A DNA stretch of 64,000 nucleotides from Trichosphaerium sp. ATCC 40318 (lineage: Eukaryota > Protista > Tubulinea), in assembly GCA_038496445.1 (NCBI GenBank), contig JALMLS010000612.1:434001-498000 (forward strand), in the 5' to 3' direction. The notes beneath the pieces are model-generated. The model was not told the DNA's origin. It was given only the letters and a program-made list of their open reading frames with translations, and did not search any database. A program made the translations under genes and the position numbers. Within the stretch, counting starts at the first letter, position 1, and the number at the start of each line of letters is the position of its first letter. This document shows positions 1 to 23,626 of the stretch, one piece after another.

Positions 1-1595
1 TTAAATGTGAAATCCTTAGCAGAATTCTATGCAGTAGGTAGTGTTTCTGTATTACAAAAACAATCTATTAATGCACGTGGGTTTTCAGCAAAGTAAGCCA
101 TAAATAGTCTTTCTCTTTTTTACAAACTATTTAAACACTTTGTTCTAAGCTCTCTTCTCTTTTTCTAGATTCTACGGAGGAAGTATAAGTATCTTACTCA
201 ATAGACTTTATCCCAAGTTTAAGTGGGAACCTTTTCGTTTCAAGTACGGTGTATACCTCGCTGTGCAAATAAGCTTAAGAGCTTTGCTCTTTCTTTTTTC
301 TTATATTTTTACTATGTAGGGTTATGCCAAAGAACCACTGGTCTATTGTAAGAAACCAGATGGATTTCTTTGAGAACACTGCAAGAGAGCTTTATCTGAT
401 GACCCTTGATGAATTTTATGATATGACAACATCAGAATTTATTGATCTTGGCGCTTCTGGTCTTATTCTCAGGCAGTACGACACCAGCAGTTGGTGATTA
501 TTTAGCATATAACGCATACTAGGTATGGTGGATCGTACGTTAAGGCATTACAAACGGTGTATCCCAACTACGAATGGAAAGATTATGAGTTCAAGTACGA
601 CATTCTTTGTCGTGATACGCAAAGTACTAATAAATGTTACAAGGATTGCTCCACGACACGCTTGGGAAAATAAGGAAGGTGTAACGAAATACTTATCTGG
701 TATGTAGTACACTATTTGTAAGTTGTATTTGATTTATTAACAATTAAGTTAGTACTTGAAGACAGGTTACAAATTTCAAGACCTGAAGAATGGTACAGGG
801 TATCATTGGAGAGATTAAAAGAGAATGCAAAAACGACTTTTCTTGCTTCATCTTTCCCCCAGTGTTTGAGTCTACTCCACCCAGAGATGTCATGGGACTT
901 TAGTGTATTCGAATACCGAGCAAAAAAGACAGTACAATGGTACTCTAAACCGGTTTTTTATGAAATACCTCAGGTTTTCCTAAAGCTATTTGTATAAATT
1001 AGGAGTTTGTACCGGCGTGTCGTAGACTTGCTCCCTGATTTTGAGATAAAAGAGGAAATCGATTTAAGTAGATATTTTCAAGGCAAGTCGACACGTGTGG
1101 ATATTTATATTCCTACACTTCGTCTTGCACTTGAGTACCAAGGTAAAGAAACGTAAACTATTTTTCTTATCTTTTGTTTTGCTTTCTAACAACCTTACCA
1201 GGACAACAACACTACCACGATGTTAGTTGCTACGGACTTGCACACATGTGGAAGAGAAATGATAAATTGAAGAAACGTGATTGTGAAGCAATGGGCACGT
1301 GAACATGAGTCACTTTTCGAGTCCAGCATTCACTAAACTTTGAGCTTTCTTCTTACAATAAGTATTTAGGTGTAACTTTAGTACCAATACCGTATTGGTG
1401 GAACCAAGATAAATGGAGCGTTGCTGCAACCATAATGCATTACAGGAACGTACTTCTTTTGTTTAATTATTTATACATACTGATAGTTGTTCTAGACCTG
1501 ATATTCGGTTTACTGGTATACCAAATGGGGTGAAGCCGCTAGTACAACCGACCTCAACGTTTTTTCAAGCAAAAAACAAACAAATCCTGCTGTGA
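1..1595 (+). CDS. Trp-rich tandem-repeat protein with C-terminal PD-(D/E)XK (DUF559/Vsr/RAP-like) nuclease domain; 5' end outside window (paralog A)
   Basis: Spliced exons give repeats (PKNHWS..RNQMDFFENTAREL..DEFY..GASGL..YGGSY..ALQTVYPNYEW), then AKKTVQW..RVDIYIPTLRLALEYQGQQHYH..GVTLVPIPYWW; stop TGA at 1593-1595. Confidence 0.8.
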
Positions 1596-2312: not shown

Positions 2313-3524
2313 ATTCTGAGGAGGAGTAAAGGATTACGCAATAATACTCGAATCATTATCAATAGGCTTTTTAAATTACGTGACAAGCATGCATACTTAT
2401 TGGCTGGTATTCGCGATCTATCTATACACGAACAATATGATATTACATTCAAGACTTATGATAAACTTGCTGGAGCATATAGACTCAATCTGAGCTATTC
2501 AAGTATCAACGATGAAGGTCTCAGATCTATTGCTGGCGTACACACGCTTAATCTTTGTGCTACACATCATACATCTGATGAGGGTATTGAGGCTCTTAAG
2601 GGCGTACATGAGATTAATCTAGAAAGCAAGAACATTACAGGATCTTGTTTTAAAGGGCTGAAAGGAGTTCACACTATCAATTTAACTGGTTGCCATAATC
2701 TAAGCAATGAGTATATGCATTACCTAAAAGGAGTTCACAAGATAACGCTCTCTTGTTCTAGCATTACAGAAACTGGCATTCAAGCTCTTGCGGGCGTACA
2801 CACAATCGATTTACGAAAAATGAAAGACGGCGCTGTGACAAATGATGCCGTTAAGGCATTGGCTGGTGCTCATACTATTTACATTAACAATTGCCTTAGT
2901 GTCACTGACGAAGGTGTCAAGGCTCTTGCTGGGGCGCACACGCTGTTTTTGGCGTGCCTTGATATTACTGATGACGCTGTCGTTACTTTAGCGGGAGTTC
3001 ATCACATTGTTCTAAAAGATAACCACAACATCACCGATAGATCAATGAAAGCGCTCGCTGGTGTTCACACTATTGATATATGCAATTGTAGTAAAGTTAG
3101 AAGCGAGGGTATAAAGGCTTTAGCTGGAGTTCACACAATCTTTATGAGAGAGACTAATGTTGACGATGAAGCTCTGAAAGCAATAGGTCGTCATGTTCAT
3201 ACCATTTGTCTCTCGCGTTGTATGTCTATTACTGATGCTGGTATTAAGTATTTAACTTCTGTACATACTATTGATATCAGAGGTTGTACTACATTGACAG
3301 ATGAAGGTGTAAAGGCGCTTGCAAATCCTAATATCTTTAAAGTTAATATGAGTGAGATTGACTTAACATTGGATAGTTATAACTGCCTTAAAGAGGCTGG
3401 TGCAAAACACTTAGTGAGCTATGGTTGTCTAAGAATGGGTGATAAAGGAAATTACGGATCCTTCTTTAGAATTAGAGCAACGATTCAGAAAAATGGACCG
3501 GCTTGTGGCTGTGGTTTGTATTGA
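2313..3524 (+). CDS. Leucine-rich repeat protein (RNI/AMN1-like, GVHTI.L..C..ITDEG.KAL repeats); long terminal exon, 5' exons unresolved
   Basis: ORF 2400-3524 has about 13 ~24-aa repeats; the frame stays open back to a TAG acceptor at 2312. Confidence 0.85.
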   Translation: MLRRSKGLRNNTRIIINRLFKLRDKHAYLLAGIRDLSIHEQYDITFKTYDKLAGAYRLNLSYSSINDEGLRSIAGVHTLNLCATHHTSDEGIEALKGVHEINLESKNITGSCFKGLKGVHTINLTGCHNLSNEYMHYLKGVHKITLSCSSITETGIQALAGVHTIDLRKMKDGAVTNDAVKALAGAHTIYINNCLSVTDEGVKALAGAHTLFLACLDITDDAVVTLAGVHHIVLKDNHNITDRSMKALAGVHTIDICNCSKVRSEGIKALAGVHTIFMRETNVDDEALKAIGRHVHTICLSRCMSITDAGIKYLTSVHTIDIRGCTTLTDEGVKALANPNIFKVNMSEIDLTLDSYNCLKEAGAKHLVSYGCLRMGDKGNYGSFFRIRATIQKNGPACGCGLY

Positions 3525-7184: not shown

Positions 7185-7320
7185 TTTGTGCTTGAACTAT
7201 GTAAGTTTATCTGTAACTTAACCGATACTTAAATAATGTTGAGCTGTACTAGTACACGTAACGTAGAATACATGGTTAAGGATTTCAGCTTTGATTTCGA
7301 CGTGTGTCTAAACAATAATA

Positions 7321-10300
7321 ATGAGTAGTATCAAATGCGCCTGTACAGCATCGAGGGGATATATCAGCGGTACTAAAAGGCGATACTGCATTAAACGTCA
7401 TGCATTACACATACAAAGTCGCTCCTACGCAATAAAACTACGCAAAAATATCATTGGTGAGCTTTATAGTAGTGTCAAATATCCAATAACATATTAAATC
7501 AGGAAAGCAAGAGTTACTCACTCCAGAAGGGCAACGACAGTTTTTTGATAACGCAGCTAAAAAATTTAACGTTTCTGGTAAATCTGATTGGGATAAATTG
7601 TCAGCGAAAGAAATGTTCAAACTTTCAGGCGGTTATATCATTATGAAGTGCGTTAATCATCCTGTAATCCTGATTATATACCTTACGCGTATGTAGGGAG
7701 CATAGATTCGATCTTCAGAGAGCTCTTAAAGCTGTATATTCAGAGACAGAACTAGAAAAAGAAACACCAGAGAAAGCTTTTTTTGATATTCTCGCTTCTT
7801 CTCATTGGCCTGCTGGCCCTGATCGTTGGAATGACAGAGATTACCAACTTCGATTCTTGGCAAGGCTTTGTAAGTTCCTAAAGATAGATCCTAAAGACCA
7901 GGAAGGATGGCACGTGATTTTTTGAAAAGTTTACTTTTTATGCGGAAAACTAACATATTTTACTAGGTACAATATGAACTATACTGTAGTGAAAGAGAAC
8001 GGTGGTGAAGGATTTTTGAATGAATACGGTGGTTCCTTTAGCGTTGCACTGTTGTCGTTGTTTCCCGATAGACCTTGGAAAATCTGGAAGCTTAGCAAAG
8101 GTTTGATTTTACTTTTGTTGTTATTGTCTTCTATTGACTTTATTCTCATTGTGGGTTTAGAGGGTCAAGTGCCCAACGATTACTGGAAAAAACATAATAA
8201 TCTACGAATGTACTTTGATTTGGTTGCAAAGGAACTAAAGATGGATAATGCACCTGTTGAATGGTACAAGCTAAACCCGAAACAAGTAGTCAAACTTGGA
8301 GGACAATCTTTGTTAAAAGAGTATGAATTTTCTCTTATCAAAGCGCTCAAAGTAGCATATCCCAAGGAGGAGTGGCGTATCTGGAAATCAGGTTTGTTAG
8401 TTTTGGTGCATAGTTTGTTAATTAATCAACGTACTAGAGCTTATACCACCACAGTTTTGGGAAAACTTGGACAATATTGTAGAATTCTTGAGGTACCATA
8501 ACCCTTATTGCATTCTTTGACCTTTGTTTTTCAAGAGACACAGAAAATGAGCTACGTATAACAAATGCAAATCAGTGGTACTTTGTTAGTTACTCAGATA
8601 TTGGTAAGTGCCTTTTTTTGTTTTTGGGGAACTCGTTAACCTATCACTAGCCTCAATGCAAGGTGAGGTATTGGTTAGAGATTATAAACATTTTTTTGAA
8701 GAGGCATTAGTCACGTGTAAGTCGAAATCATGTGATGTCATTTAGTTAATAACTGTCCGCAGTGCATCCTAACTTTAAGTGGGACTTTTCAAAGATACTT
8801 CATACGCAGCGTACACGTGCATTAAAGTATGTGATGCATCTTATTTATATGTTTCTAATGTTGTAAAGAATGGCTCTTTCAATACTACGAAAAGAGTTTC
8901 CTTCGACTGAGCTTCAAAAAAATGCAGTTCTAACGCTCGAGGCGCATGAAAGCGACGAAGTAGATAGAACTATTAAGTTTGATATGTATTTACCCTCCCT
9001 TCGGCTGGCGTTAGACTTTCAAGGTAAAAAGCAAGCACATCAATACAGAAAAAATCATTTAAAAGTAGTAGCTCACTACTTAGTTTATAGACGAAATTTC
9101 AGCTGCTCGAAAGTCTCATGATATTCTACCTGGTAATAGCAATCAAATAGAGGAAGAAAATAAAATAAAAGATAGCAAAGAAATGGGTAATTGAAAGAAC
9201 AACCAAATGTATCAAAGCTAATTACTACTTTTAGATATAACACTTATAGTAGTTCCTTATTGGTGGGATAGGAAAAAACACTCGTTACTTGGTACTATTG
9301 GAAGTCGTCGCCCAGATATTGAGATTAATATTCCCGATAATGCTGAGCCATTTTCTTCAAAGCAGTTCGAAAACAAAGACAAGTTTGGTAAGAAAAATGA
9401 TGTTAACTTAAGTTATTTCTTACATTTATTTAAACAGATGAAATTGAGTTTATGCTTGCATCAGAGTTCGACAAAACTGTTGACCCAAAAAATTGGTATT
9501 TCCTTAACCTTAAAATAAGTCATTTAGTTCTATTTAGGTGGATACAAGAACAATTAGATGGCCTAAGGTATGGATTTGGTTATCTCTCGATTTAAAAATT
9601 ATAGGGCTATGTGGACAGGTTCCGAGTTTGTTTGTCGTGGTGGACATACACTCGCATTACCAGCTGATTTAAAGGCTCTCCTACCAAAGGTACATACTGT
9701 GGTAAATGTTTAAAGTATTTATTATCATCAGGGAGTAATATTAGATGGAGAATTACAGTACGGAATAAAACAAGAATCTTTCAAACATAAATAATAAAAA
9801 ACATAGCATTCGACGAAGGAACCACTTGACAGTTGTTAATACATTACTCAATGAAGATCCTAACTGGAAAAACGTAAAATTTCACGTCTTTGATACACCA
9901 ATACAAAATTGCTGGTACGCTTCCTGAGTATTTTGTGGAGGAATAAACAAGCCAACTTTTTTTTTGTTTATTCAATTAAAGGTACAATTTGAGATACAAA
10001 CGTCTTAAAGAGCTGATACCGAATTCCAACGATTTTGTTTCAGTAGTAGAAACTTGGACTTGTAATGACAAAAAACACTTGGTTCAAGAATTAAAACGAA
10101 TAGTAGCACTTGGAGGCACGTTCCAAAAATACTACTTGCTTCGTTTTTATTATGACCTTCTCATGCTTTTAACAGGCGAGGGTATTATTCTTCGAAAGCC
10201 CAATTCGTACTATACTCAAGGAAGAACACATAACATGATCAAGATAAAGGTAAACAAACTTTGAAGAAGATAAGCTACTCTTTGAACACAACTTAATGTT

Positions 10301-10669
10301 GTTCTTAGAAATATCGTGATGTTGAAGTAAAGTTGCTTCGTGTAGAAAAAAACTCAACACATTTGCATTGCCAACTGTACGTCTGTCATAAATTGTACAA
10401 AGCCTTTATATGTTTATAATTGTAGACCAAGTGGTAAGGAAATCAAGGTGTGGTGTAGTAAAGCAGTGCACGATGATCCTCCAGAATTAGGTAGCTGCAC
10501 TACACTTTAAGTATCTTTATTGTGAGCTTATACATAACTTATAGAGGGTGTCATTATAATAAAATATACAGGCAAAACTAAGGAGGGTAATTTGAAAGAA
10601 CCATTTTATCACAGAGAATGTCTAGAGTATGATTGGGAACACGTGTGTAAAGTATACAAAAAGTCATAG
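7321..10669 (+). CDS. Mitochondrial-presequence repeat protein with degenerate PD-(D/E)XK domain and C-terminal ATP-dependent DNA ligase fold (adenylation + OB), motif I Lys->Gln (paralog B)
   Basis: N-term MSSIKCACTASRGYISGTKRRYCIKRHALHIQSRSYA; Trp repeats; KFDMYLPSLRLALDFQD..VVPYWW; then FMLASEF..NWWIQEQLDGLRAMWTG..VILDGEL..FHVFD..GGEGIILRKPNSYY..GRT..MIKIK..IKYTG..EPFY; junctions across the nuclease-ligase boundary are in frame. Confidence 0.85.
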
Positions 10670-10901: not shown

Positions 10902-11810
10902 CTAGCTCCACCTAACTGGACGTTCTACACATTTAATACCCAATGACTCAATACCTTTACGTGTTATATCACAATACTCACCAATTTCAACAACCTTGAG
11001 CGACTTCATATACTTCAAACATTCATCTGTAATAGTAACATAATGTGATACAACTAATTCTTCAAGGTTTACTAGTCTCTTCATACCTTCATCTGTAACG
11101 TCGAATAAACGAGCAAGTACTAGGTTTTTGACATTTTTCAACTCGACGATACCTGCATCTGTTATATCTCCGCTTACCTGAACCGTATGGACATTTGCGA
11201 GGTGTCTAAGCCATGAATCTTTTGCGTGCCACACTGTAATCTTATGTACACCCTTGAGTGCTTCTATACCTTTAATAGTGACGCGATCACAACCAGCAAT
11301 GTCTATTGTATGTACATCTTTTAACTCTTTCAAGCCTTCATCAGTTACGCCCTTACAATTAGATAATAGAATCGTGTGAACGCTTCGTAGCGACTTTAAT
11401 GTAACGTCTGATATTTCTGCTCCGCAAAGGCTTATCTTATGAATAGAGTGTTTACCACCTTGAAGTAGCGACACCATTGCTTTATCTGCGTTGCTTATAG
11501 CGTCTAGATTTACTGTATGTATGCCATAAAGGCAAGCCAAGTCGCTATCAGTTACCTTATAACCAGCACAGCTGAATTCAGTGTTTTTTAGCAACGGGCT
11601 ACCCTTTAGAAAGCGACAATCCGACGCTACTTTGTCTCGTTTCAATTTTATAAATCCAAAGCCGATATTACCACGTATGATGTTGTTAAAACGTCGAGAG
11701 ACTACAGTAGACGCTATAAGCTGTTTTTTGTTCAAATACAGTAGAATGCACGTTAATATCTCTGGTGGTAAGCACTGGGTCGAAAGAACTTGTCCCCCTG
11801 CTTCGGACAT
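10902..11810 (-). CDS. Intronless F-box/LRR protein
   Basis: F-box LPPEILTCILLYL..VSRRF, then VHTI.L..C.GVTDEGLKEL repeats. Confidence 0.9.
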   Translation of the reverse strand: MSEAGGQVLSTQCLPPEILTCILLYLNKKQLIASTVVSRRFNNIIRGNIGFGFIKLKRDKVASDCRFLKGSPLLKNTEFSCAGYKVTDSDLACLYGIHTVNLDAISNADKAMVSLLQGGKHSIHKISLCGAEISDVTLKSLRSVHTILLSNCKGVTDEGLKELKDVHTIDIAGCDRVTIKGIEALKGVHKITVWHAKDSWLRHLANVHTVQVSGDITDAGIVELKNVKNLVLARLFDVTDEGMKRLVNLEELVVSHYVTITDECLKYMKSLKVVEIGEYCDITRKGIESLGIKCVERPVRWS

Positions 11811-15618: not shown

Positions 15619-16762
<1,144 letters not shown>

Positions 16763-17189: not shown

Positions 17190-18703
17190 TTATTTCTTCT
17201 TTTTGTAATTCATCACCTTGTACCTTTGTTATGAGCTAACCACGATTCGCACAGATGCACAAGGTTTCTTTTTAAATGTAAGCACGTTTTACGTCTCTCA
17301 AAGTAATTTGTTGGTGCCTTTGCTTGTGCTTCTTGTTTAGGCGTTCAAAACGATGCCATTCCCAGTTAAAGTCTGGTTCTAACTCCTCTAGAACGTGAGG
17401 CCAATATTTCATAAGACCTTCACCACCCATATTTTCAGTAACCTCAGTAAATGATATGCGATACCTAGTTGGCATGTAAGGCTACAAACATGAATGAAGT
17501 ACTGGAGGCCAGGAACTACAAAAACAGAAGTATGAGGTACCAGTCATCAGGTGCCATAATGCTATGTTGTTTTTTGACACTTTGTAGAAAAGCTATGCGA
17601 TTATCTTTTATTCTCCAGTATCCTCTAGGTGCGTGCCTGATGCGTAAATATGCTATAATGCAATTTTTTGGACGTACTTGAATCTGTGTAAAGACCAACT
17701 ATAGTTCGGGTAAGCACCTGAAAGACATGCGGCGAGAGAGTTTCCATACACTTTTCTAACCAAAAAGTGTCAATGATATGATTTCTCATAGAGTTGTACA
17801 GAATACTATCGCCTCCAAGTGTGATGATATCTCTATTCGTAACACTATACCAACCCGATAGATCTTTAATATTGTGTTCCTGTGCGACGTCATTCAACAT
17901 GCGACGCTGATTGTCAATACTTGACCAATAATTCATGGGAGCACAGCTAATAAAGCACTATTTTAGTATTTGTCTCTTCAAGTTTATGCACGTGATAACT
18001 ATGTGCTGCTACTCAAAACGCTGGAAAGCGTACGTGAACTTTCTTCCGTCCCATTCGTATGTAGAATAGATTGCTTGTAAGCAAGCAATAAGTGAATTAT
18101 TGTAATAGTCACCGAAATAGGAATTAGAAGTGGATGGTTTTAAAAGTTAACGTACAGTATTGTTCTTGCCCCGTTTACAAGTATATCTTCTTGACGTACG
18201 CTATACCAATCTTCCATGCATTTGAGGTGGAGGTTAGATGCAATAGTGTCCATCATAAGGCGTTGATGTGTAATATTATTCCAGAAGTTTTGAGGAGCTT
18301 TTCTGAAGTCGCTGAGCGTCTATTACCCTACTTACAGTGCGTACGTAAAAAGCCAAGGCTTCCATGTATATCTTGAATAGATTGAAGCCAAACACGTCGC
18401 CATATCGCGCCCATGCCTTTTTCTACGCCAAGTAAGTTGTGTATGCTGTTTTAACGTTTATGTAAATGGGTAAACTTTAAAACGGCCTCAAATAATGCCT
18501 GTGTTAGAGCTATACTTTATGGGCTGTCTAACTACCGCGTCGAATTGAATGTACGATATCTTGTACCAATCGTCCATGCATTTAACATCCAACCGCTTAG
18601 AAGCTTTTGAAACCGAGAGTTCGTCAGCCAATCTAAACAAACGTCACAATTTGACACAAGCCATAATCACGGTTTACAAATCTGTAGTAGCTCGTAATCT
18701 CAT
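17190..18703 (-). CDS. Trp-rich tandem-repeat protein, repeat-only (paralog C); both ends approximate
   Basis: VKCMDDWY; PMNYWSSIDNQRRMLNDVAQEHNIKDLSGWYSV..LGGDSIL; APRGYWRIKDNR; MGGEGLMKYWPHVLEELEPDFNWEWHRF; no nuclease motif seen. Confidence 0.7.
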
Positions 18704-18845
18704 CTGGCGGCAATGGGAATTATCTTACTGTACTAGTTGCTGCAACAGGGTACATAGAATTACTGGCTTAGCAGCACTCGTTAAGTGCAAGCTTCATCAT
18801 GCTTTTTATTTACAGGTAAAGTACAGAGGCTCGCTTTGGTTTCAT

Positions 18846-19866
18846 CTAAGCGGTTGATCCAACTAGTGGTTTGAATGCCTGTTTCGCGGACAGTATGAGC
18901 AATCTATAGACGCTTAGAGAGTAGGATCAAAAGAAAACTGTTACCTTTGGGCTGATTTCTTTTTCCTGTATTTGAACTTTTTCCAATCCCACTTAAAATG
19001 TTTGTACAGACTTTGAAGTGCCAATGGGAAGTAAGGAGTAATACCAGAGCCACCCAATAGATATAATTGATCGATAGAAACGTTATACCACGATGAAGGA
19101 TCGTTTATAGTAAGGGTATTTTCGACTGTCTTGAAGAATGTAACGATATTTGATTCTGTTTGCCAAAATCCACTTGGCTTAAAATTTTTTCGTCTAAAAG
19201 ATTGTAAGTGGGTATGATCATAAGGCACAAACTAACGTAAAAACAAAGGCCTCGCTTTCCCATTCAAATTCTGGATATATTGCTCGAAGTGCAGCATCTA
19301 GACTTCGATACCTATGGAGTTGTTTAATAAATGTTGAGATGGTACAAAATGCTTGCTTGGAAGATAGGATACTAGCGCCACCCATCCGCCGTGTATGTTT
19401 ATTTGACACATTGTACCAATCTGACAAGCTCTTTATATTCATTTCCTCTGCTAATTCATCAAATCTTTCCCTCTGGTTTGTAACAGTATGCCAAGAACCA
19501 TGAGGTGCACACCTTTAACAAAAAAAATTAAATCATGTGAGAAGTGTCAAAACGTACGGAAACCTCCAGAAGTGCCATTCGTGAGTGCAAAACGTTTCTT
19601 TTAACAAGCGAAACGTTGACGTACAACTAAAACAATAAGCTAACGGCGAGAATAGGTTTTCTTTTTTTCGAAAGCGCTTATGAGCGTTTATTTGGTCTCC
19701 TTGCGTAGTACCTTCGCTTAAAGTGCCTTCCTCCGGCTTTTATTACGTCGGTATGTGGTACTTTGTACCAATCATCTAGTACTTTAACGCCAAGGGTTTG
19801 CCCGATAATATTAAGCTCGAATACAGTATTTGGCAATACGGTTGCAGAAAAGGAGCGTGTAATCAT
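18846..19866 (-). CDS. Trp-rich tandem-repeat protein ending just before the nuclease domain (paralog D)
   Basis: MITRSFSATVL..GVKVLDDWY..GG; IKSLSDWYNV..GGASIL..AIYPEFEW; PSGFW..SSWYNV..GGSGI..WDWKKFKYRKKKSAQRLL..STA*. Confidence 0.75.
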
Positions 19867-21483: not shown

Positions 21484-23626
21484 TCACATAACGGGTCTTT
21501 CTACATTTGCCCACATGACCGATGACCTGTTTCTGCGATTTATATCTAACGATGCGTCCATTGAGTCTTCTGAGTGATGTATCGCTTTGATCAATCCAGG
21601 TAATTGTTTTGATACAAGGGTTGCAATGTTGTGGTAACTAAGGTCCATCCAATATGGTACAACAATCAAATGAATGCCTTTTAGTAGAAATATTAGCGAC
21701 AGATGACACTTTTTAGACTAACCATTTTCTTGGCATAGCGTAGCCTTTTCTACATCTCTACTTGATGCAACTGAAGCTGGAAGTGCTGTTGCTGGTATGT
21801 CATAGTAATGTTGTTCACCTGAGGTTACAAGGTTAAGTACGAAGGCAAACACATAGTTGTTCTTACCTTGATATTCGAATGCAAGGTTAAATGCTGGAAC
21901 AAAAATGTCGAGATTGACAAGTCCTCCAGTCAAGTCACCAGTGCCAATAAATTGCTCTTCTTGTACAACAGTATTAGGAAATAACGCCTCAACACATTCA
22001 AGTAAAATCCTGGAGACGAAAACAAAAAATAAGTAAAATACGATAAGAATTATGTCACCTTTGTTTAGCTTTCTTGATGTGATGGGAAAACTCAACCCAC
22101 CTCCATTCATATTTTGGATATATTGTTTTGAGATTATAAGGATAGTACGAGAGCATCCCTTGTCCACCTCTTTCGCGTATTTGGCGAGAAGAGACACGAT
22201 ACCTTAACCAAAAAGTTAGGTCTATTTATCACTTTTGCTTACCATTCAGAAGGATTATTCAGGTGTAGAGACTTTGTCAAACGCTGTAAAAACTTTGTTT
22301 GATTTCTTTTACGTTTCCAGTATCCACTTGGTTTAGTGTCTCTAAAAAATCTGTCAACAAAAAAGACTTATTAAAATAGAAAGAGTTTGTCAAAAACAAC
22401 ATTTAACGGTTATAATAAATGCATATACACCCTCAACGTACACAGTTTTAAATTGGTGGTGTGGGTATAATTCCTTTAACGCAGTTATAACACTTCCATT
22501 GTACCTAAAGGTTATTTTTTAAATGATTTTGTCTTGTTGTTTTTAGTCTCAACGTACTTGCTAAGTGTGCTCTTTCCTCCATGTTGTATGTACAAACTTG
22601 CTGGTATCGTTACCATATCATCTAGCAACTTAATATTCATTATAGATCCAACTTCATCAAACACTTGACGCTGGTGCGACACATCATCCCAAAAACCCCA
22701 TCTTTAGATAATTTTAGTATGTTTTCAAACGTTTTTTTCCAACAGTCACGTGTACGTTTTATAGAAATTGTTCCATGGATGGCTGGGATACAATTCTTTG
22801 AGCATTTTGGAAACTGAACCTTGGTACCTGATAATAAACGTCAGTAGAGTATAATCTCTCAAAATCATACTTTTGACTGAAATTGGATCCGAATAGCCCC
22901 AAGACATCTTCACTGTGTATCCTGCTCCAATCGTCCATTATTTTAATACCTACTTCCATAGCCACATCATCTAAGATATCTCTTTGGTTTTCAGGGGAAC
23001 CTACAATATCAGCTGAACTACAACAAAGTCAGTACAAACAAAAAACAAATTCAAGATTCACCTGAACTTGTGAGCACGCCACTGTTGTTCAGGGTACACA
23101 ACAGACAGTAGTCTGAACAAGGAGAAGTTATATCTGCAGTTACAATAAAATCAATCTGATTAGTTGGTAGTCATTACCTTTCTGGTGGTACACCGTAGAT
23201 GTTATCACTTACATCTTTGAACGATTTTGTGTACCAGTCATCCATCATTTTGACACGCAATGTCGCTGATAGAGCATTTATAGACGCTTTTAATTGCTTT
23301 AGTTGGGTACTGGCATTTCGTGGATGGCTTGAAGCCGTTGAATGGAGGGATCTATTTCGTGATTAATTGTTAATTAACGGCATGTCGTGTATTAGTTTTT
23401 CTAGGCGTAGGGAAGTATAATAACTGCAGCTCGGCGATTTTACAAATCAAATACTAACAGGCGAATATATACACGTACGTTACTCTAAAACGCCCTGATG
23501 TACGTATACGACATTTTGTACAAGTTTTGGTAACTACTTGCGTTCTAACGCCCTGAACATTACTGTTAGTGATTATGCAGGCCAGCAAAACGTACAGAGT
23601 GTAACATTGTACGATCTGTTAGCCAT
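21484..23626 (-). CDS. Trp-rich tandem-repeat protein with C-terminal PD-(D/E)XK nuclease domain (paralog E); start approximate
   Basis: LHSTASSHPRNAST..VKMMDDWY; IKIMDDWSRI; KPSGYWKRK; NLDIFVPAFNLAFEYQGEQHYY..RDVEKATLCQENGIHLIVVPYW. Confidence 0.8.

Follow-up and report, generated by a model that had tools for sequence, protein, structure and literature searches.

The 64,000-nucleotide stretch of Trichosphaerium sp. ATCC 40318 DNA analysed here, called the window below (positions 434,001 to 498,000 of contig JALMLS010000612.1, assembly GCA_038496445.1), is eukaryotic DNA of about 38% G+C with very short introns. On its forward strand lies a gene whose protein product strings together a basic N-terminus, four Trp-rich repeats, a nuclease-like domain and a DNA ligase module of the Lig E type, in which the motif I lysine that becomes adenylated is replaced by a glutamine (Gln530). 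The gene is real, intact, spliced and transcribed.

Structure and transcripts of the gene

The gene and its parts are listed below, with residue numbers of the encoded protein.

7321..10669, forward strand: whole gene, 22 exons and 21 introns of 37-67 nt (19 GT-AG, 2 GC-AG), 2289-nt open frame, 762 residues
7321..7456, forward strand: exon 1, basic N-terminus (residues 1-45), 11 Arg/Lys in the first 45 residues, presequence-like in composition
7503..8795, forward strand: four Trp-rich repeat units of 72-92 residues, aligned (residues 46-360)
7910..7966, forward strand: GC-AG intron of 57 nt, donor GCACGT, inside repeat unit 2
8796..9387, forward strand: nuclease-like domain, PD-(D/E)XK, Vsr/DUF559/RAP-like (residues ~361-505)
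9014..9107, forward strand: degenerate nuclease core D-F-Q / D-E-I-S-A-A, interrupted by an intron at 9024-9090; family consensus E-Y-Q-G-x-Q-H-Y
9388..9437, forward strand: GT..AG intron of 50 nt flanked by the last nuclease exon and the first ligase exon, spliced out in RNA contigs
9438..10249, forward strand: nucleotidyltransferase (adenylation) domain of the Lig E type (residues 506-677 of the ligase module, 506-762), 170 bits against the bacterial Lig E profile
9538..9567, forward strand: micro-exon of 30 nt encoding motif I, W-I-Q-E-Q-L-D-G-L-R, with Gln530 (CAA) at 9551-9553
9741-9755, 9880-9894, 10178-10198 and 10238-10249, forward strand: ligase motifs III (LDGEL), IIIa (FHVFD), IV (EGIILR) and V (IKIK)
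10116..10175, forward strand: GC-AG intron of 60 nt, donor GCACGT, in frame and stop-free, at a place where homologs have no residues
10309..10669, forward strand: compact OB-fold domain and C-terminus (residues 678-762; profile positions 195-270)
10586-10609, forward strand: motif VI-like stretch G-N-L-K-E-P-F-Y

The exon chain was assembled on the maintenance of frame at every junction and on homology to the repeat units, to paralogs in the window and to Lig E. When the exons were joined and translated all 21 splice sites proved usable, and no stop codon or frameshift was met across the 2289 nt that end with the TAG at 10667-10669. An earlier note made from the sequence alone had placed the gene at 8870-10669. 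This extent was too short: ATG 8870 encodes an internal Met, nine further exons lie upstream and the frame remains open back to ATG 7321. We put forward ATG 7321 as the probable start codon, a qualification made because the sole RNA contig over the 5′ end (7304-7519) retains intron 1.

From 8870 to 10669 the splice chain given in the earlier note, VVPYWWDRKK .. DKF / DEIEFMLASEFDKTVDPKNW / WIQEQLDGLR / AMWTG (slashes mark exon junctions), was reproduced from the sequence. The splicing there had been called canonical, as indeed it is at all sites except those of intron 10116-10175, which is GC-AG. Left unspliced, this intron would add 20 residues between G and GEG that are matched in no homolog; it was seen unspliced in a DNA contig of one sequencing run (X3, below) and there is no RNA evidence for its removal. 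The other GC-AG intron, 7910-7966, is the sole in-frame intron that both removes a TGA at 7923 and restores the register W-Y-(11 residues)-G-G. Two of the 21 introns are GC-AG, both with the same donor hexamer, and introns of this type may be unusually frequent in this organism.

Parts of the gene were found in four sequencing runs (X1-X4), in all cases as assembled contigs. Those of X1, X2 and X4 come from RNA because they are spliced, and the RNA contigs confirmed the removal of three introns (9388-9437, 10377-10425 and 10491-10544). The first of these separates the nuclease exons from the ligase exons and is bridged by a 193-nt contig, present in both X1 and X2 (same sample), with 153 and 36 letters on its two sides. 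The in-frame nuclease-ligase fusion proposed earlier is thereby seen in RNA. Transcripts that end between the nuclease and ligase exons, as expected of two genes, are not what was found, since the junction is spliced in the RNA of X1 and X2.

Compared with the window, X1/X2 gave four listed coding differences: G17V and K25R within exon 1, I476V, and N737I within the motif VI-like stretch. The RNA contig that contains the 46-nt intron 1 differs from the window there by three substitutions and a 1-nt insertion. Divergence between the strains is thus 4-9 of 572 coding bases versus 4 of 46 in intron 1.

The first 48 residues of the protein contain no Asp or Glu (P ~7e-4 given the protein's own composition), and N-terminal amphipathicity was not above that of shuffled controls. 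The suggestion that the protein is targeted to an organelle therefore comes from composition, and targeting should be regarded as a possible property of the N-terminus.

The ligase module, its lost lysine and its relatives

A Lig E profile built from 15 bacterial proteins aligned with the ligase module over its whole length (170 bits, positions 21-270 of 277), and PF01068 matched the piece encoded by exons 18-19 at 26.7 bits, the cut-off being 26.2. For comparison, Lig E genes were taken from bacterial and archaeal genome contigs. The CAA codon at 9551-9553 is the Gln of E-Q-L-D-G, as the earlier note had read it, and Gln530 aligns with the column of the adenylated lysine. Lys occupies that column in 258 of 258 prokaryotic Lig E proteins and in all 12 intron-bearing, eukaryote-like environmental Lig E genes in which motif I is covered.

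The lysine was lost from an adenylation domain that is otherwise well preserved. Motifs III, IIIa, IV and V are retained, again as first reported, and every nucleotidyltransferase column that is 100% conserved among the 258 prokaryotic proteins is kept except the lysine. When the threshold was lowered to conservation of at least 98%, 27 of 32 columns were kept, those lost being the lysine, the residue two positions upstream of it (a Ser conserved at 99.6%, Gln in this gene) and three others. The gene has no other K/Q-x-D-G-x-R site in any frame. We considered that an alternative exon might supply K-x-D-G and rejected it: there is none in any frame.

Mutants of the motif I lysine are dead for steps 1 and 2 of ligation (PMC3514331), and Lig E K25A is inactive (PMC6144786). 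The Gln530 protein is predicted to be likewise unable to form ligase-AMP or to activate the 5′ phosphate (steps 1 and 2), and because Gln530 replaces the motif I lysine the protein should not be a self-sufficient ligase.

The earlier note had likened the module to a compact minimal ligase of bacterial or phage type having a retained OB domain. Lig E is what the module is, and as in Lig E the OB fold follows directly after motif V with no separate DNA-binding domain; the protein as a whole is a 762-residue repeat-nuclease-ligase rather than a two-domain enzyme. The OB domain is present as well, and it is a compact subtype rather than the standard OB domain of Lig E. Measured against the 258 prokaryotic proteins, only 5 of 17 near-invariant OB columns are kept, and the ratio of OB identity to nucleotidyltransferase identity is 0.78 versus 1.06 or more in all 258. 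Both Lig E OB motifs that contact DNA, G-K-G-K-F and F-basic-I-G-S-G-F-x-D, are absent: the G-K-G-K loop is shortened by deletions, and I-K-V-(gap)-W-C-S-K stands in place of the second motif. In Lig E combined mutation of the OB DNA contacts abolishes DNA binding (PMC6144786). The nick binding that had been proposed for this protein is doubtful given that both contact motifs are missing, as they also are from a lysine-bearing relative, L174.

L174 emerged from a metagenome scan that gave 80 Lig E loci, 24 of which had no single full-length open frame. About a dozen of these 24 split into colinear pieces 30-90 nt apart, which we read as intron-bearing eukaryotic genes. Most intron-bearing Lig E loci keep the OB DNA-contact motifs, the exception being L174 (metagenome contig Ga0164242_10357120, 1-1084), an intron-bearing Lig E gene on a contig of 1084 nt. 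Its motif I is intact (E-K-M-D-G). L174 and the window ligase are 32% identical over 239 residues, with just two 2-residue gaps in the OB region, and the OB domain of the gene resembles that of L174 as closely as the nucleotidyltransferase domain does. Moreover, in-frame splicing joins the L174 ligase to a Trp-rich repeat unit at the C-terminus, of the same type as those in the window (43 bits), the order of domains (ligase, then repeat) being reversed versus the window gene.

In a quick maximum-likelihood tree of ligases the gene paired with L174 at a Shimodaira-Hasegawa-like approximate likelihood ratio test (SH-aLRT) value of 87, the two forming a long-branch pair. Their sisterhood is supported independently of the tree because they share introns. 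Three intron positions and phases are common to both genes: one falls within the first Trp codon ahead of motif I, another follows motif V and the third precedes P-x-G of the OB domain. The first, of phase 2, splits the codon for the leading Trp of W-W, and L174 matches it in place and phase.

Decay of the OB domain and motif VI specific to this gene was entertained and rejected: L174 has the same compact OB domain together with the lysine, and K-E-P occurs in motif VI of another lysine-bearing locus, L183. The odd OB domain is thus a trait of the clade rather than decay, because lysine-bearing L174 shares it. Judged by sequence, the ligase module belongs to a eukaryotic Lig E subclade that has a compact OB domain and has lost the DNA-contact loops of Lig E, and the loss of the nucleophile is what sets this gene apart within that clade.

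Other Lig E genes seen in the course of the searches are also variants. Three metagenome loci (L183, L184 and L190) form a well-supported intron-bearing Lig E clade having a variant motif VI, P-K-E-[PA]-R-Y or P-S-C-A-A-Y, and keeping the motif I lysine. Among P0154-P0240, a WGR domain (PF05406) is carried by many Lig E proteins of 410-560 residues from planctomycetes and other bacteria, which is another natural Lig E fusion.

Searches for closer relatives of the ligase module were less productive. The protein homolog search with a mixed ligase profile returned prokaryotic Lig E only, as did a search with a bacterial Lig E region in a long open reading frame, a query chosen so that long fusion proteins could be retrieved. 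A representative-library search with the 89-residue piece of exons 18-19 gave two Lig E fragments (P0004 and P0006) and four repetitive false positives, none at 50% identity or above. Contigs encoding the neighbouring intronless gene had no match on record.

The nuclease-like domain, the repeats and the gene family

The gene belongs to a group of at least four Trp-rich-repeat genes within 23 kb, some of which carry a related nuclease domain.

before 1500, forward strand: Trp-rich-repeat gene
7321-10669, forward strand: the ligase-fusion gene
17383-19800, reverse strand: Trp-rich-repeat gene
21487-23278, reverse strand: Trp-rich-repeat gene
1028-1446, forward strand: nuclease paralog
21487-22011, reverse strand: nuclease paralog

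Two of the three sibling repeat genes end in a canonical E-Y-Q-G-x-Q-H-Y nuclease domain. The repeat genes belong to a lineage-specific repeat-nuclease family that has been tandemly expanded in the window. The core of the paralogs is D-I-[YF]-[IV]-P ... E-Y-Q-G-x-Q-H-Y ... D-x-x-K-x-x-x-C ... P-Y-W-[WM]. The earlier note had reported that the nuclease of the ligase-fusion gene reads D-F-Q-D-E-I-S-A-A; it does, and at this place both window paralogs read E-Y-Q-G-(E/Q)-Q-H-Y and have an intron after E-Y-Q at the position equal to that of the gene.

A scan of viral contigs uncovered a giant-virus family with the same nuclease core (180 relatives), in which D, E, G, H, Y, D, K and C are invariant among 38 aligned homologs. 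The corresponding eight positions of the gene are D, D, D, S, A, E, K and S, so that two are identical and two more are Asp/Glu swaps. The core of the gene can thus be written D ... D-F-Q-D-E-I-S-A ... E-x-x-K-x-x-x-S: the G-x-x-H-Y element is lost, and Lys and Asp409 are kept. The viral proteins (L032:2623-3309 and loci L034-L113, on IMG/VR contigs of 10-450 kb) are about 228 residues long and combine Cys-rich zinc-finger-like repeats with the Vsr-like core. This family, present in several copies per viral contig, is the nearest intron-less relative of the window nuclease domain.

The fold of the gene's own domain was judged by a viral proxy only, a giant-virus homolog 39% identical over 37 residues to a window paralog, whose Foldseek matches had E values of 3e-3 to 3e-2. 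The AlphaFold model of this protein (predicted local distance difference test, pLDDT, 85) matched Vsr with template modelling (TM) scores of 0.59-0.62 and the core of the homing endonuclease I-Bth0305I with TM scores, normalized by target, of 0.72-0.74. It also matched PvuRts1I/AbaSI, the DUF559 protein 3hrl and several chains of the Toxoplasma mitoribosome, which carries RAP-family proteins (PMC11652630). The PHROG families matched by the viral protein are homing/HNH endonucleases. No Pfam family, including RAP (PF08373) and DUF559 (PF04480), matched the exon pieces, a 159-residue stretch of a paralog or the viral nuclease region, and the ESM Atlas supplied leads only (DUF559/DUF2726) for the nuclease.

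The four repeats of the gene follow the consensus P..YW...NQR.FFD.VA..L.I....DWY.V......LGG..LL..Y......L...YP..W..WK. The AlphaFold model of repeat unit 3 (pLDDT 88) consists of five helices and had no PDB match. Among its neighbours in the AlphaFold database the best had TM scores of 0.81-0.85 at 28-36% identity; two of these are named 'RAP domain-containing protein (Fragment)', further accessions are presumably dictyostelid and a DUF4046 entry stood at rank 16 (TM 0.61, E 0.6). The ESM Atlas lead was DUF4046 together with amoebozoan clusters (feature score 0.89). No Pfam family, DUF4046 (PF13255) included, matched the repeat exon pieces, and neither the protein homolog search with a repeat unit nor the metagenome scan with repeat unit 3 gave a match.

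Genes of other kinds were also noted in the window. Leucine-rich-repeat proteins in which a G-V-H-T-I/L motif recurs are encoded by two long intron-less open reading frames, 2400-3524 on the forward and 10902-11810 on the reverse strand. The protein of the latter is F-box-like at its N-terminus, and its reading frame runs convergently towards the 3′ end of the ligase gene. A polyubiquitin gene of at least three and a half ubiquitin units, the first apparently interrupted by an intron, occupies 15619-16449 of the reverse strand.

Interpretation and comparison with known systems

We favor the reading that the protein is a non-catalytic pseudo-ligase, and probably also a pseudo-nuclease, within a tandemly expanded repeat-nuclease family, and we would place about an even bet on it. 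Both active sites had been called degenerate in the earlier note. This stands for the ligase, the nucleophile of which is gone, and the nuclease motif is degraded relative to the paralogs; the nuclease is less clearly dead, since it has the Asp, the Glu-to-Asp change and the Lys. Hence the nuclease is likely to be inactive, a conclusion less secure than that for the ligase because the acidic positions and the Lys survive in conservative form. The protein would then be catalytically inactive and have a binding role. In the proposed mechanism the repeats, not the OB domain, would supply substrate binding for the clade, a proposal made because the clade dropped the OB DNA contacts and because ligase and repeats co-occur in two domain orders. 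On this view it is a nucleic acid- or end-binding adaptor comparable to the RAP-domain helical-repeat proteins of organelles, many of which are non-catalytic binders or adaptors, and relatives that retain catalysis may work alongside it. As the earlier note supposed, it plausibly descends from an ancestor that actively cut and ligated, and lysine-bearing L174 can be cited as a relative.

The open frame, the kept splice sites, the retained nucleotide pocket and exons less variable than intron 1 argue for some constraint on the gene. Several points weigh against our reading. Gln530 was seen in this gene alone, and contigs of all four runs lack coverage of 9473-10123, so that the support for CAA 9551 and the 30-nt motif I exon comes from the assembly and from homology. 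The nuclease and repeat domains were called from exon pieces, paralogs and a distant viral homolog. Expression is apparently low (short contigs, depth 2-7), all four listed coding differences between the strains are nonsynonymous and the gene has the longest terminal branch of the ligase tree (4.18, that of L174 being 2.33 and the median 0.33). Branch length and nonsynonymous differences alike argue for relaxed constraint, and they fit a changed function equally well. Together with the low expression they would also fit a decaying yet transcribed paralog, either a young unitary pseudogene or a redundant drifting copy, in which the catalytic sites were lost first and no independent function remains. 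Impairment affects two catalytic centres together, the terminal branch is 1.8 times that of its lysine-bearing sister L174, one of the strain differences (N737I) lies in the motif VI-like stretch, the only 5′ RNA contig retains intron 1, and tandem expansion of the family makes redundancy likely. We nevertheless think decay rather unlikely, in that 2289 nt contain no stop or frameshift, 21 of 21 introns have usable splice sites, every fully conserved nucleotidyltransferase column besides the nucleophile is kept, the OB domain is as similar to that of L174 as the nucleotidyltransferase domain is, and exons vary far less than intron 1 between strains.

Lys-to-Ala mutants of the Chlorella virus, Methanobacterium and vaccinia DNA ligases and of MthRnl keep step 3 activity on pre-adenylylated substrates (PMC3514331). 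The window protein might therefore be an ATP-independent joiner that performs step 3 only, or a binder or de-adenylase of 5′-adenylylated ends; lysine-bearing relatives would adenylylate the 5′ phosphate and this protein, positioned by its repeats, would seal or hold the AppDNA or AppRNA end. The motifs that hold AMP and the 5′ phosphate (III, IIIa, IV and V) are intact and L174 shows that a lysine-bearing relative with the same repeats exists, yet the pocket is occupied by Gln rather than by a small residue, the long branch suggests loosened constraint and substrate binding is hypothetical. We know of no natural ligase confined to step 3 and consider this explanation improbable. A slim chance likewise attaches to a protein in which the ligase alone is dead and the nuclease still cuts, that is, a repeat-targeted endonuclease with a vestigial ligase tail. 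Asp409 and the Lys of the D..K element are kept, and the PD-(D/E)XK motif permits Glu-to-Asp replacement. However, the G-x-x-H-Y element, invariant in the 38 viral homologs and both paralogs, reads D-E-I-S-A; its His presumably corresponds to the catalytically important His of Vsr-type enzymes. The invariant Asp of the D..K element is also changed (to Glu), as is the Cys (to Ser). Finally, a gene that encodes an active ligase, its CAA being due to an error of assembly or sequencing or to a rare allele, seems to us scarcely credible, despite the coverage gap at codon 9551. A C-for-A error in non-repetitive sequence is unlikely, the Ser two residues upstream and three other near-invariant nucleotidyltransferase positions are altered as well, and the long branch argues against a single-base artefact.

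A bolder possibility, which we regard as a long shot, is an undescribed repeat-guided system of cutting and rejoining in an amoeba-like eukaryote. Arrays of Trp-rich modules of about 75 residues would replace the OB loops and aim the ligase and nuclease at specific sites, possibly in an organelle, and the member lacking the lysine would perform or control just the ATP-independent last step, in which it would hold or seal 5′-adenylylated ends made by lysine-bearing paralogs. If true, it would be a natural split of three-step ligation between two proteins.

Covalent nucleotidyltransferases that lack the nucleophile in an otherwise kept pocket are rare, and each shows further uses of the fold. 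The protein family considered here has repeatedly linked Lig E ligases with helical repeats of a single kind, and the order of the domains differs between this gene and L174. If the repeats confer choice of target, programmable ligases or nucleases could be obtained from the family, and an unknown nucleic acid-processing pathway could exist in these eukaryotes. If the gene is merely a drifting copy it is ordinary, and the family still merits attention. The literature searched contained no fusion of a RAP domain to a ligase, no natural DNA ligase lacking the lysine and no mention of 'DUF4046'.

The nearest known systems are Lig E and Lig K (Psy-Lig, Ame-Lig, Adineta vaga AvLigE and kinetoplastid Lig K), which, like the gene, have an adenylation domain followed by an OB domain and no N-terminal DNA-binding domain. 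The gene differs in the Gln of motif I, in the missing OB contact motifs and in its many spliceosomal introns. Moreover, Lig E and Lig K stand alone or carry PBZ zinc fingers, whereas in the gene a repeat array and a nuclease-like domain precede the module. Published eukaryotic Lig E genes include some that have extra domains, PBZ fingers among them (PMC10665377); fusion of Lig E to a RAP-like domain or to these repeats is not mentioned in that report.

The organellar RAP proteins (the FASTK family, apicomplexan RAP/HPR and algal OPR-RAP) resemble the gene product in having a basic N-terminus and helical modules; these are followed by a Vsr-like PD-(D/E)XK fold, as is predicted for the gene product, with catalytic residues that are often incomplete. 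Their modules are helical hairpins of 37-38 residues, in contrast to the DUF4046-like module of about 75 residues and five helices in the gene, and the Pfam RAP model had no match on the exon pieces. To our knowledge no RAP protein has a ligase module. Bacterial LigD (ligase, phosphoesterase and polymerase) and other end-processing fusions have a nuclease-type domain and an ATP-dependent ligase in one polypeptide, as the gene does; the domains of LigD are active, belong to other families and folds, stand in another order and are accompanied by no repeat array.

The loss of the lysine has two parallels. Snurportin-1 has an m3G-cap-binding domain of the covalent nucleotidyltransferase superfamily that has lost catalysis and binds a nucleotide-capped 5′ end. 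Snurportin-1 belongs to the capping-enzyme branch rather than to Lig E (its Pfam name, SPN1_m3Gcap_bd, was listed beside mRNA_cap_enzyme), so the likeness is one of analogy, with no sequence relation shown. The Chlorella virus ligase K27A and MthRnl K97A proteins also lack the motif I lysine in an otherwise intact site and seal pre-adenylylated ends only (PMC3514331); these are Ala mutants made in the laboratory, whereas the gene has a natural Gln in a multi-domain protein. The gene is not a new category: it combines a Lig E module with a predicted Vsr/RAP-like fold and an array of helical repeats, each of a kind already known.

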